From: Oopsacas minuta
Lineage: Eukaryota; Animalia; Porifera
Reading direction: 5' to 3'
Length of the DNA stretch: 64,000 nt
Assembly: GCA_024704765.1 (NCBI GenBank)
Contig: JAKMXF010000188.1
Location: 669,715 to 733,714, forward strand
The notes beneath the pieces were generated by a model, which made no database searches, was not told where the DNA came from, and was given only the letters and a program-made list of their open reading frames with translations. Of the stretch, positions 10,740 through 16,326 are shown one piece after another (position 1 is the first letter of the stretch; every line of letters begins with the position of its first letter). Made by a program: the position numbers and the translations under genes.

Positions 10740-11356
10740 TTTCAATAATTTCTGATTGGTCCTTAGCTGTCTCTGGCATAGCTCAGTGTATTATTTAATA
10801 GCAATTGTAACTAGTCAATCGGGTCGAGTAGAGTTTCATGTTTGACCGGTGGAAAACATTCAATATTGTGTAAGTATAGAAGCTGTTGTAAATACTCCCT
10901 GCCTCTATCATATGTATTTCCTAAGATATTTGGTGACTAAGGTAAAGTTTTGCACCTATGTATCGAGCTGACCGCCACAGTCCTATATAAATCCTTGAAA
11001 TTGTTTCATATTTTGGCGGGCTAATTCTTGGTTTCATTCATTATAAAGATTTTCAAGACTGTTAATGCATAATACAAGTGTAATTTGATGTTTGTAGCAC
11101 AATTTCCCATTCTTTTTTATTTGTAGGACTAATTGCAATCATATTTAAGACTGCCAGAAATGCTCTAATAAATTTAAGATATATATATATATGTGAAAAT
11201 ATTCAAAATACATTTGGGTACCAATCATAAATCATATTTTTGGAATATATATATTTTCACACCTCTTCATGTCAAGCAGTTCCGTTTCATAGAATAGGGA
11301 AGTATGATTTAAATCCATTACCATATTTATAATTCGTCTTAGCTTTCACACAACAA

Positions 11357-14300
11357 ATGGCTTCAGGTGATGTGTTCACGAATATGTTCGGTAACACCTT
11401 ACTACGAATTGAAGGTGGAGTAACTAAGGAGATCGAAACATCTACTCTAATCAAAGACGGAGTAATCGCACTCTACTTTTCTGCTCATTGGTGTCCCCCC
11501 TGTCGTACCTTCACTCCTACTCTAGGTGATTGGTACAAAAAACTAACTTCTGGAAGTTTGAAAGATAAACTCGAGATTGTCTTTCTCAGCTCTGATCAGA
11601 GTGAAGAAGAGTTTAAAGACTACTACTCTAGCATGCCCTGGTGTGCTCTCCCCTATTCAGACAGGGAGAAGAAGGTTGATATTTATCTGTACTGTCATTA
11701 GCTTTATTGATTGATATATCTATTTATTTCTTAGGCTGAGCTTTCTAAGAAATTCGGTATCAAAGGTATTCCTTCTCTCATATTCCTGAACGCACAGAAC
11801 GGGAAAATAATAACACGTGAGGGGAGAGAGGTTGTGAATGAGGACCCAGAGGGGGAACAGTTCCCCTGGAAGCCAAAGTCAATTTCTGAAGTCCTCTCTT
11901 GCCTGGAAGACAAACTTGTCGACAATAAGGGAGGACAGTATAAGCTCTCTGAGATACGAAAAGATAAATATCTAGCTCTTTATATTTCAGCTCATTGGGT
12001 GGGTAGCTATATGAAATATACTGGATCCCAGTTATAAGAGACAGTAGGTCTCCGTCTAGAATACATATTCCCCTCCGGGTATGAACTTTTCGATGCCCTG
12101 ACGTCATATTCATTAGGTTCTACTGCAGTGGTTTTCCAAATGTCTTGAATTTATGATGAATATATGATGTTAGGACGGGACGCTAGGGGCGTTTGAAAAA
12201 TAAATAGGCTTAGAGACGGGTTGCGATCAAAAGCTCCGGAACACTATTCTATTGTATATTGAATTTTTGATACGTAATATAATTCTACAGTGTCCTCCTT
12301 GTAAAGTATTCACTCCTAAGCTAGTGGAGGCCTACCAGAAGCATCAGGACAAAGGTTTTGAAGTAATTTTCATATCGTTTGACAGAGATGAAGAAAGTTT
12401 TAAAGATTATTTCGAAACCATGCCATGGAAATCTGCCAATTACGCTGATGCGAACAAACTCGGACCAAAGATAGCAAGGAGATTTGGAGTGAAGGGTAAA
12501 TATTCTCTAATTTGCTTGTTTGTTGATTATTATGTGTTTATCTTTATTCATATATACATAGGTATTCCTACTCTTGTGTTAATGGATAAAAATCTTGAAG
12601 TAATTAACCAGAACGCGAGATCTTTCATAGAGCATGATGAGAAGTTTGAGGTAATAATTCGTATTTATTATATGCTGAATGATTAGCATTGATACTATGC
12701 TATATGACTTTCTAATTACAATTTATCATATATAGTGGGTATTACTTATAAGAACATATCGGTTATAAGAATATATCGGTTATAAGAATATACTTTGATA
12801 TTCCCAAGGGTGTTATCATCAGCGATAACCACTAGGCCGGATCGAGAAAAGTATACATCGTCGCTTCAACTTCTACCTAAGGCAAAAGTTGCCTTTACTC
12901 TTTTCCAGGAAAATGCGAGACATAAATTTGAAAATATTTCGAGTTGACCCTTGCAGTTTTATATTTTTGCTGTGTCACTTTCGCAAACTTGACTTTAAAT
13001 TGTCCGAATTTTCTAATTCCTTTGACTTAGCCCCTATAGATATATTATTTGGTAATAGTAAGTCGCATATTTGCTTTCGAATGATGTATTAGGCTAATTT
13101 CCATGTCCAAAGGTACTCAAGTTGTCAATATATCTTTTGCATATTCTATCATACCCTAATAATATTATCCACCCCCTTTTTTTCCGAAGATTTGCAAATG
13201 CATAATTCTTACAAAAAATAGCTATATCCTCACCAAACTTAGTATAATTCTGTATCTAGATCCAAATTCATCAATAGATTACCACAAAGAAATTTTACCA
13301 ACTTTCCTTATCTCTTGCTCTTAACTTAGTTGCCATTTATCTAGCATGGAATTTATGGTCAATTATTATATCTAAATAAAAACTCACTCAAATGACTCAT
13401 ATTATAGAGTGATTATATTCCTATAATTTATGTAATTTTGAATATGGTAGGATACACGCTTAGTATTGTAGTATTTCATCCTGTTTTTGGTTATCCTGGA
13501 CCCATCCCAGAAAATCTACTCCCGATAAAACTAGATCTATACAATCATTATAGTATGCTTAGAAATGAAGATTCTAAATCAACTAGAGATGATATAGCGA
13601 AAGAATTAACTGAGGTATTAGTGCGTATCTATAATTTGGCTTCCATACCCACAAAATCAGAGCTCCAAATATATCAGTACATCATTTCTGATATTATCGA
13701 GAGAGCTAAATATTACAGAAAAGTATCCAAAACAAGCAATATCCTGACGGTATCCAGCCTATAATTCCGAATTCAATGTCTTGTTCGACGTCTCAAGTTG
13801 CAAATGCCAAATACAAGAAGAAAAAAGTTTTGCTCTCTCGATAATATCAGAAATGATGTACTGATATATTTGGAGCTCTGATTTTGTGGGTATGGAAGCC
13901 AAATTATAGATACGCACTAATACCTCAGTTAATTCTTTCGCTATATCATCTCTAGTTGATTTAGAATCTTCATTTCTAAGCATACTATAATGATTGTATA
14001 GATCTAGTTTTATCGGGAGTAGATTTTCTGGGATGGGTCCAGGATAACCAAAAACAGGATGAAATACTACAATACTAAGCGTGTATCCTACCATATTCAA
14101 AATTACATAAATTATAGGAATATAATCACTCTATAATATGAGTCATTTGAGTGAGTTTTTATTTAGATATAATAATTGACCATAAATTCCATGCTAGATA
14201 AATGGCAACTAAGTTAAGAGCAAGAGATAAGGAAAGTTGGTAAAATTTCTTTGTGGTAATCTATTGATGAATTTGGATCTAGATACAGAATTATACTAAG

Positions 14301-16326
14301 TTTGGTGAGGATATAGCTATTTTTTGTAAGAATTATGCATTTGCAAATCTTCGGAAAAAAAGGGGGTGGATAATATTATTAGGGTATGATAGAATATGCA
14401 AAAGATATATTGACAACTTGAGTACCTTTGGACATGGAAATTAGCCTAATACATCATTCGAAAGCAAATATGCGACTTACTATTACCAAATAATATATCT
14501 ATAGGGGCTAAGTCAAAGGAATTAGAAAATTCGGACAATTTAAAGTCAAGTTTGCGAAAGTGACACAGCAAAAATATAAAACTGCAAGGGTCAACTCGAA
14601 ATATTTTCAAATTTATGTCTCGCATTTTCCTGGAAAAGAGTAAAGGCAACTTTTGCCTTAGGTAGAAGTTGAAGCGACGATGTATACTTTTCTCGATCCG
14701 GCCTAATAACCACTGTATTGTCATTTCACTTCAACACTGATCATGAATGAATTAACAAATCCGGATACGTATTATACGGTATTGCTTTGAATAAGTGCCG
14801 GGGGTAGCACTACACGAAATAAGTAACCGCCAGAGCGCTTATTCAGAGCAATACGAAGGGCATTAGGATCGTACGATCACGATCGCGATACTTTTTTGAC
14901 GATCTGGCGACGATCGGCAACCATTGTTTTATTAAGGATCGGATGTAAGATCGCAATCCTTTTTTGCACAAAAATTTTCGATCATATTTTCGATCATTTT
15001 TGTACTTTGAATGCTACTATCATTAGCGTTTTGTATACTTAGGTTATTGTTCCAAATTTGTGTTCAACAATCAGTAATATTCGTTCGTAGAATGCGTTGA
15101 TTCTCCACCTAAGTTTCTTTTGGCATAAGAAATGATGTAACTATCAAAAATATATGTCTTGAATATTACACAAACGATCGGAAAAATGATCGAGATCGGG
15201 ATCGCGATCGTTTTGAGATAAGGATCTTGATCGGGATCGCGATCTTGTTTAACACGATCGACTAATGCCTTAGTAATACGTTACACTAATAACGCTATTT
15301 GTAATATACAATTGACAACAGCTATCTCGAACACAAAGAGCAGTTCAACTGTAATCCAAATATTATAAGTATAGGATGCTGATTTCTCTTTAGAGTTCGA
15401 GTTAGGGAAGTACGTATATCTGAACCCTGCATAGCAGTATTCCTTAATTTTATTTACTTATAGAATTTTCCATGGAGTGCTAATATCTGTACTACTCTCA
15501 ATTCTGAAAAGGATTTTGCTTATCTAGTTAGTCACCCAGCTGTTCTCTACACAGTATCAGGTGAGTAGTAGCAATAGACCATTTGGATCGATTCAAAAAA
15601 GGTAAAGTGTAATCTCGTTTGAGTAATTCCATCTTTCCCCAAAGGTTAACGCATGTTACCTCTATATCCCTATTGTCATGTCTACCTACCTACCTCCACC
15701 TCCTCTGCATTTAAGAATACATAATATATTCTCCAATCTTTAAAATTATAACTTTATTGAGTATTGGGCTACTGTTATTTATAGAGATTCAGCTCCACCC
15801 CCGCATCTGATTTAGCCTACTAATAATCAATATACTCAGTGTAATTCAGCTATTGGGTGTATAAGCTAGTTAAGAATACAATAGAGATGACGTCTAGAAT
15901 ATTATAATATTAAAATTGACATTTATATATTTTATGAATGAACCAATTTTCCCGTTGATTGTCACAAAATAAATAATTTTGTAATTAATCCTTCCTACCT
16001 TTCATACACATATTTATCAAACAGATGAATCGAAGTTTAACGAAGCTATGCAAATCCTGGATGCTGTCAGTAAGAAATTCATTGCTAACAAACCTCGGGA
16101 CGCAATAATCAATTTCTTCTGCTATGTCGATGACGAAAAGGCTAACAGTGCATGTAAGGAGTTCTTCCACAAGGGGTGTGGTGGTGTAGCAAATCAGGTG
16201 TTTATAATAGACCCTCAAGAGCAGATGAAGAACAAAGAACCTATCACAAAACTAGATGTGGACTCAATCTACACTCAAGCAATGTCGTACATTGAGGGAG
16301 AGCTCGATATGGTTAAAGTCGACTAA
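11357..16326 (+). CDS. NXN: Nucleoredoxin-like thioredoxin-family protein (two WCPPC domains plus a third non-catalytic domain)
   Basis: Six exons join in frame: 11357-11674, 11735-11998, 12291-12495, 12562-12650, 15464-15560, 16025-16326. Motifs [42 protein letters not shown], then ALYISAHW|[28 protein letters not shown]. Confidence 0.9.
12833..14705. mobile_element. 1,873-bp palindromic hAT-derived element: 874-bp inverted arms with a 125-bp spacer, in NXN intron 4
   Basis: Arms 12833-13706 and 13832-14705 are symmetric (both coordinate pairs sum to 27,538) and I found no mismatch by eye. Termini TAGGCCGGATCG and CGATCCGGCCTA; perfect 8-bp TSD ATAACCAC at 12825-12832 and 14706-14713. The mirrored ORFs 12889/14446 and 13438/13759 in the track arise from this symmetry. 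Confidence 0.95.
13438..13830 (+). pseudogene. N-terminal fragment of a hATm-like transposase (frameshifted, truncated)
   Basis: [24 protein letters not shown]...[20 protein letters not shown] resembles, from recall, the hATm-type N-terminus (PxFGxP...LPTxxDV..YY...EV..IWxxASIPT). In the +1 frame, 13781-13807 reads LFDVSSCKC, resembling the LFDI(A/S)xCKC motif that follows it in those proteins. Family assignment needs a profile search. Confidence 0.65.
14856..15272. mobile_element. hAT-like MITE with CGATC-rich subterminal repeats in NXN intron 4
   Basis: Ends AAGGGCATTAGGATCGT and ACGATCGACTAATGCCTTA; flanks GCAATACG (14848-14855) and GTAATACG (15273-15280), a 7/8 TSD match. Dense GATC/CGATC motifs near both ends. 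Confidence 0.75.

Follow-up and report, generated by a model that had tools for sequence, protein, structure and literature searches.

A palindromic derivative of a DNA transposon was found inside a host gene in a 64,000-nucleotide stretch of the genome of the hexactinellid sponge Oopsacas minuta (assembly GCA_024704765.1, contig JAKMXF010000188.1, positions 669,715 to 733,714 of the forward strand; hereafter, the window). The palindrome amounts to two thirds of intron 4 of a nucleoredoxin-like gene, whose six-exon model predicts a protein of the same length as the annotated product (424 amino acids, aa), with two thioredoxin-like WCPPC domains (Thioredoxin_8 in Pfam, E 7e-21 and 1e-18). Read support was drawn from Logan contigs of four public runs, X1 to X4, of which X4 is RNA-like and the other three are DNA-like. 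Introns 2 and 3 of the model were confirmed by GT..AG joints in X4. Exon depth in this run was 5e4-1.2e5 versus 9-32 over the non-exonic flank, and the nucleoredoxin host gene is very highly expressed; for the exons between 11357 and 12650, word depth in X4 reached thousands of times that of the flank, among the most highly expressed genes of the sample.

The orthologous intron 4 measures about 320-420 bp in two related assemblies (L006:8078-8495 and L007:3383-3705), in which a neighbouring kinase-Kelch protein is 87% and 83% identical, respectively, versus 2,813 bp in the window; the insertion is therefore lineage-specific. Altogether, intron 4 of O. minuta has grown about seven-fold via transposon insertions. 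No paralogous copy of the empty insertion site was found in the window, and the orthologous introns of L006 and L007 are too diverged to be aligned. Neither the open reading frames (ORFs) of the arms nor two nucleoredoxin exon ORFs retrieved a record in exact-sequence look-ups.

Base-by-base comparison of the two arms of the palindrome (Table 1) gave 874 paired positions with 0 mismatches, beyond which come one mismatch and then three matches. The loop is 125 nt long, or 117 nt if the three extra paired bases are counted; a repeat search accordingly reported arms of 878 nt (12833-13710 and 13828-14705) with a 117-nt spacer. Both outer borders adjoin a perfect 8-bp target-site duplication, ATAACCAC. 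A chance origin was rejected, as a perfect inverted repeat of 874 bp is beyond chance and the odds of an 8/8 duplication are 1 in 65,536. Folded as RNA, the 1,873 nt were predicted to form a stem unbroken over 874 bp (minimum free energy, -1555 kcal/mol). In the left arm, the native terminal inverted repeat of the element matches positions 1-367, its 5' internal or leader sequence follows at positions 368-611, and transposase codons start at 13444. No further arm-like copy was found within the 64-kb window. A previous sequence-only reading of the window had described a hairpin in nucleoredoxin intron 4 with 874-bp arms lacking any mismatch, a 125-bp spacer and a perfect 8-bp duplication; all of this was borne out, the location by the RNA joints, the splice sites and the 424-aa model, and the dimensions by the base-by-base comparison.

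Table 1. Coordinates of the host gene, of the parts of the palindrome and of the full-length relatives (window positions, except for the last row).
Feature	Position	Strand	Basis or remark
Nucleoredoxin-like host gene, 424 aa	11357..16326	+	Six-exon model; Pfam Thioredoxin_8
Nucleoredoxin exons	11357-11674, 11735-11998, 12291-12495, 12562-12650, 15464-15560, 16025-16326	+	Six-exon model
Nucleoredoxin intron 4, 2,813 bp	12651..15463	+	Spliced RNA joints, exon depth, splice sites
Left target-site duplication, ATAACCAC	12825..12832		Fits hAT (Ac-type) nTnnnnAn
Left arm, 874 bp, hAT 5' end	12833..13706	+	Perfect pairing; colinear with full-length L003-L005
Truncated ORF, transposase N-terminus	13444..13764	+	ATG at 13444; homologues P0001, P0002
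Left half of native short inverted repeat	13694..13710	+	13-bp core at 13694-13706; in all full-length relatives
Spacer or loop, native element sequence	13707..13831	+	Colinear with left arm; matches L001, L003-L005
Right half of native short inverted repeat	13828..13844	+	Switch to reverse complement of left arm directly after 13844
Right arm, 874 bp	13832..14705	-	Exact reverse complement of left arm
Right target-site duplication, ATAACCAC	14706..14713		Matches left copy
Full-length hAT copies	L003:3312-6509, L004:3919-7114, L009:3391-6480, L010:2913-6109, L005:3583-6772

The contig check covered positions 10800-13870, that is, the left flank, one arm, the spacer and the fold-back joint. The junction between the left flank and the terminus was spanned by error-free contigs in X2 (10800-12858, 0 differences) and X3. 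The turn from the spacer into the right arm was recovered in X1 as an "opposite strands" joint, 13710->13825, at a depth of 108.7 versus 85.3 for the flank, a single-copy depth with no indication of a second locus, and a similar joint was present in X4. Within the left flank (10913-12581), eight single-base differences from the assembly were common to X1, X3 and X4, with none in X2. Although filed under a single sample, these runs probably represent different individuals or haplotypes; the flank alleles of X1, X3 and X4 differ from the assembly, and the support for the structure therefore probably comes from more than one individual.

The arms belong to a family for which five full-length copies, fetched via homologues of the arm ORF, were compared, four of them from O. 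minuta (L003, L004, L009 and L010) and one, L005, taken from an ENA assembly. These relatives are 3.1-3.2 kb long, with termini TAGGCCGGATCG...CGATCCGGCCTA. In L003, L004 and L005, the three tested in this respect, the terminal inverted repeats measure 362-368 bp and are 95-97% identical. Their target duplications (ATGTTAAC, CTATTTAG/CAATTTAG, ATACATAT/ATATATAT, ATCTATAT and TTAACTAC) are perfect over 8 bp in L003, L009 and L010, and match at 7/8 positions in L004 and L005. The target consensus of Ac-type hAT elements is nTnnnnAn, and the six duplications, those of the five full-length copies and that of the window, all fit it, each having T in second and A in seventh place. hAT termini follow the consensus (T/C)A(A/G)NG; the first four positions of the termini found here, TAGGC...GCCTA, agree with it, and the fifth is C instead of G.

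The first 88 codons of the arm ORF lie inside the perfect arm, or 91 if counted from a TTG start at 13438 to position 13710. Its homologues include P0001 and P0002, at 75-78% identity, and a distant set at about 32% with a common N-terminal domain. With respect to intact relatives, the frame is shifted after "..ERAKYY", corresponding to a 1-nt difference against L003, L005 and P0120. The family protein has about 700 aa, with pieces in L001 and L003-L005, natural homologues of up to 585 aa and Atlas clusters of about 716 aa. When the arm ORF and family proteins of 177-586 aa were scanned against Pfam, no significant family was detected, Dimer_Tnp_hAT (PF05699), DUF4371 and the BED finger included, and a family-profile sequence search of solved structures gave no match. 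As the family members have no Pfam match, membership of the hAT superfamily rests on the fold, the duplications and the termini.

Since the window copy is truncated, the presence of a Hermes-like RNase H DDE core with its helical insertion was tested on the family protein. The AlphaFold model of family member P0112 (predicted local distance difference test score, pLDDT, 85.5) had Hermes transposase as its top 11 matches in PDB (E 1.7e-6, probability 1.00), and its top 26 Swiss-Prot structure matches were all hAT transposases or hAT-derived proteins, headed by KIAA1586, ZBED4, the maize Ac transposase, RICESLEEPER, ZBED1, FAM200 and DAYSLEEPER. The model of P0024, a C-terminal fragment, gave no significant Foldseek match in PDB or Swiss-Prot; in a Foldseek-independent search with this shorter model, Hermes ranked first among 48,161 chains (Z 6.5). 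The fold was thus resolved only with P0112, which is near full length. The invariant D, D, C..H and E-containing motifs of the family protein stand in hAT order. The element is therefore a divergent hAT with unusually long terminal repeats, and its transposase N-terminus is what the arm ORF encodes. The superfamily proposed in the sequence-only reading was thus supported by the 6/6 duplications and by the Hermes and Ac fold matches. The same reading had described the arms as two 5' ends of the element: both do carry the end that leads into the transposase N-terminus, but the second 5' end is new only for arm positions 368-874, because native elements already have terminal inverted repeats of 362-368 bp.

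In this lineage, undetected by Pfam, a conserved N-terminal domain (..FG.P..LP..LPT...ASIPT..) takes the place of the BED finger, and relatives are common in arthropods (Atlas cluster with 2,216 members of about 716 aa). The locus thus defines a hAT lineage missed by Pfam, which in a sponge has terminal repeats of 367 bp and which has relatives in many arthropods.

The family is abundant in the O. minuta genome. Contigs at least 80% like the arm reached about 50-170 times the flank depth in the three DNA-like runs, and in the contigs the terminus was joined to 14-19 different flanks, which fits a genome with 15% of DNA transposons (PMC10280926). The four full-length copies from O. minuta are 96.7-98.5% alike and therefore form a young subfamily. 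The latter is about 89% identical to the arms, and the arm has 53 private substitutions in about 985 bp; between 10 and 13% of the arm 21-mers match each young copy perfectly, 40-56 of them in the coding part. Identical to each other, the arms thus come from a diverged lineage, and either the fold-back is recent or gene conversion has kept the arms alike. The homologous family elsewhere in the genome on which the proposal of a silencing locus depends does exist, as seen in the depth of the arm contigs and in the four full-length copies. Among the full-length elements, all those whose frames were checked (L003, L004, L005 and L010) have broken reading frames. In a related assembly, L002:9415-10400 is a plain internal-deletion derivative in which roughly 810 bp from the 5' end have been fused to a short 3' coding piece; non-autonomous derivatives thus arise in this family by more than one route.

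Comparison with the native copies located the breakpoint of the palindrome to the base. All native copies are colinear with the left arm and the spacer, on the + strand, up to position 13844 and diverge from there on, where the window runs back through its own left arm in reverse complement; contig loose ends at this same position carry the native continuation present in other copies. The two halves of a native short inverted repeat, 117 nt apart, lie exactly at the arm ends. The core of this repeat is 13 bp long, with 17/18 matching positions when the flanking A/T run is included, and the lone arm mismatch (index 874) is the native mismatch of the short inverted repeat. A junction placed inside a native inverted repeat of 13-17 bp reads as the signature of snap-back priming.

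According to this mechanism, a DNA 3' end halted some 1,010 nt inside the element would have folded back at the native internal inverted repeat, so that the 3' end in the downstream half would pair with the upstream half of the same strand. Extension of the paired end back to the left terminus of the element would then have put a mirror copy of the first 874 bp where the other 2.2 kb had been. Two routes could have completed the product, which was either sealed in place, with the snap-back strand annealing to the resident right-hand 367-bp terminal repeat, or formed elsewhere during gap repair, with a transposase subsequently moving the palindrome as a unit. The sequence-only reading had taken the target-site duplication to imply transposition of the palindrome as a unit. 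This claim did not stand, since snap-back repair of a break within a resident element would yield the same product in place, duplication included, and no transposase would be needed; with annealing possible within the 367-bp terminal repeat, the duplication was rejected as a proof of unit transposition. No sites distinguishing left from right terminal repeats were found inside the repeat, because the two repeats of one copy have copy-specific variants in common. In-place repair fits the sequence as well as unit transposition does, and the data favour neither.

Non-autonomous derivatives of Tc1/mariner elements arise by internal loss with breakpoints at short repeats of the parent element (PMC3814204). 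The palindrome resembles such derivatives, attributed to abortive gap repair or to the birth of MITEs (transposable elements of the miniature inverted-repeat kind), in the loss of an internal part and in the position of the breakpoints at short repeats, with the family copy L002 as the plain deletion case. In contrast to MITE-type deletions, the short repeat used here is inverted and not direct, and the outcome is a palindrome and not a simple deletion. The locus provides a clean natural example of a DNA transposon turned into a palindrome.

With regard to transcription, one RNA contig of X4 crosses the loop junction, at a depth of 16.8 versus 9.2 for the neighbouring intron, although contamination with genomic DNA is possible. 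The high expression of the host gene and this contig, at intron-level depth, suggest that hairpin RNA is probably made from the nucleoredoxin pre-mRNA. Each pre-mRNA molecule would carry an 874-bp perfect hairpin that takes in the terminal repeat together with the leader and the initial 88-91 transposase codons, an incidental source of double-stranded RNA (dsRNA) on which Dicer or ADAR could act. The X4/X1 depth ratio was 0.11-0.45 over the arms versus 0.09-0.38 over the non-exonic flank. At 12833-13870, X4 showed 15 A>G and 19 T>C differences versus 11-12 and 10-12, respectively, in the DNA-like runs, counts that are confounded by exon variants and contig artefacts. The direction of this slight excess is that expected from ADAR editing, yet it is not evidence for editing, and this interpretation was set aside because the excess is small and confounded by the exon variants.

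The structure recalls two silencing systems of maize. Mu killer (Muk) is an inverted duplication that comprises a terminal inverted repeat plus the transposase gene's 5' part, read through from a host promoter with a long hairpin RNA as the expected product; it makes small interfering RNAs (siRNAs) and heritably silences MuDR (PMC3440606). The O. minuta locus is alike in its anatomy and in its placement where a host promoter would read through it, but it involves a hAT in an animal and not MuDR/Mutator in a plant, its hairpin has 874 bp versus about 4 kb in Muk, and its arms are about 11% diverged from the main resident subfamily; siRNAs and silencing have been demonstrated for Muk and are hypothetical for the sponge locus. 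In the maize Ac/Ds composite insertions, which belong to the same superfamily as the element described here, inverted duplications of fractured ends give dsRNA and siRNAs that silence Ac (Wang et al. 2020; bioRxiv 10.1101/2020.01.07.897926). Those composites derive from alternative transposition and re-replication, include flanking DNA and have a demonstrated function, in a plant. The animal locus is instead a clean snap-back within the element itself, made at a native short inverted repeat; its termini are precise, it has a target duplication, and its function is hypothetical. Known animal sources of endogenous siRNAs (endo-siRNAs) include the Drosophila hairpin RNA (hpRNA) genes, the dsRNA from Tc1 read-through in C. 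elegans and the inverted repeats of mouse oocytes. Like them, the sponge palindrome would provide a long, perfect or near-perfect intramolecular duplex, transcribed from the host and a potential Dicer substrate; unlike them, it is a single intronic locus in a hexactinellid sponge, for which small RNAs are hypothetical.

On this basis, the hairpin could be regarded as a silencer of the Mu killer type, in which RNA from the nucleoredoxin pre-mRNA, or from inward-facing promoters of the element itself, would be diced into siRNAs that repress the family transposase mRNA or the terminal repeats in trans. The inverted duplication of a terminal repeat plus the 5' transposase part, as in the maize loci, the very high expression of the host gene together with the RNA contig across the loop junction, the large homologous family in the genome and the fraction of arm 21-mers perfectly matching each young copy all speak for it, as does the demosponge Amphimedon, in which clusters of multi-mapping endo-siRNAs map to transposons and show secondary structure (PMC6211395). 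Against it, the RNA/DNA depth over the arms was no higher than over the flank, with no sign of special accumulation or depletion, the young and abundant subfamily has diverged by about 11% from the arms, and the broken frames of the checked full-length copies mean that there is possibly nothing active left to silence. Furthermore, the native 367-bp terminal repeats already make hairpins in read-through transcripts, so that the palindrome is not a unique source of dsRNA. Intronic hairpins in animals are, in addition, more usually ADAR substrates. We therefore consider it unlikely that this is a silencer, and equally doubtful that siRNAs from an intronic hAT hairpin keep the family transposase silent in what would be the first animal locus of the Mu killer type. 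If siRNAs did arise from the arms, the locus would be the first known in animals to parallel Mu killer and the Ac/Ds silencing loci, and its host is an early-branching one; if they kept the family silent, transposon-made silencers would, in logic if not in descent, be older than the split between plants and animals. Without such siRNAs, the locus is an ordinary rearranged transposon relic.

The reading that we favour, and hold to be quite probable, is that of a single-copy, non-autonomous palindromic derivative of a hAT with long terminal repeats, most likely a neutral by-product of repair. Several points weigh against it. Read support ends at 13870, short of the right flank junction, and is made up of assembled contigs rather than raw long reads across both duplications; all four runs are filed under one sample; and at several arm positions the window base has no contig support, which the notes of the contig tool ascribe to the loss of rare variants by contigs in high-copy repeats. 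The last two points also speak for an assembly artefact, in which hybrid SPAdes would have turned either an ordinary element of 3.2 kb or a PacBio read that was a fold-back chimera into a palindrome. The O. minuta genome was assembled from PacBio and Illumina reads with a de Bruijn assembler (PMC10280926). Unless long reads are available, a perfect palindrome of 874 bp is beyond what an assembler of this kind can resolve. However, the fold-back joint stands at single-copy depth in the DNA-like run X1, which is not that of a rare chimera, and recurs in X4; the flank alleles point to probable support from more than one individual; both termini adjoin perfect duplications; and the junction falls inside a native inverted repeat, so that an artefact seems very improbable. 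Scarcely credible is the idea that the palindrome represents the normal architecture of a subfamily: the unusually long terminal repeats of the family would suit it, but the fold-back is absent from each of the five full-length copies and from two deletion derivatives, other copies continue natively past 13844, and no further loci with the same junction and different target duplications were found. Such a family-wide design was rejected on the relatives without fold-back and on the single-copy joint. With respect to neutral repair, it must be added that "neutral by-product" is a default judgement, that perfect arm identity is also expected under selection or gene conversion, and that a location in a very highly expressed gene is also expected under selection. 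All in all, the locus is most likely a one-off rearranged relic produced by a known snap-back route, that is, a palindromic transposon derivative and a potential hairpin locus.

Downstream of the palindrome, the same intron contains a GATCG-rich block (14850-15260) with repeated GATCGGGATCGCGATCG motifs and short inverted repeats (repeat families D1, D2 and I3), which is probably the relic of another small transposon. Finally, three public gene models of O. minuta that include sequences of the hAT family, P0021 (LOD99_9496), P0153 (LOD99_11205) and P0074 (LOD99_9515), are chimeras, in which pieces of the hAT transposase are fused to a Tc1-like DDE domain or to a G-protein-coupled receptor (GPCR)/NHL gene.

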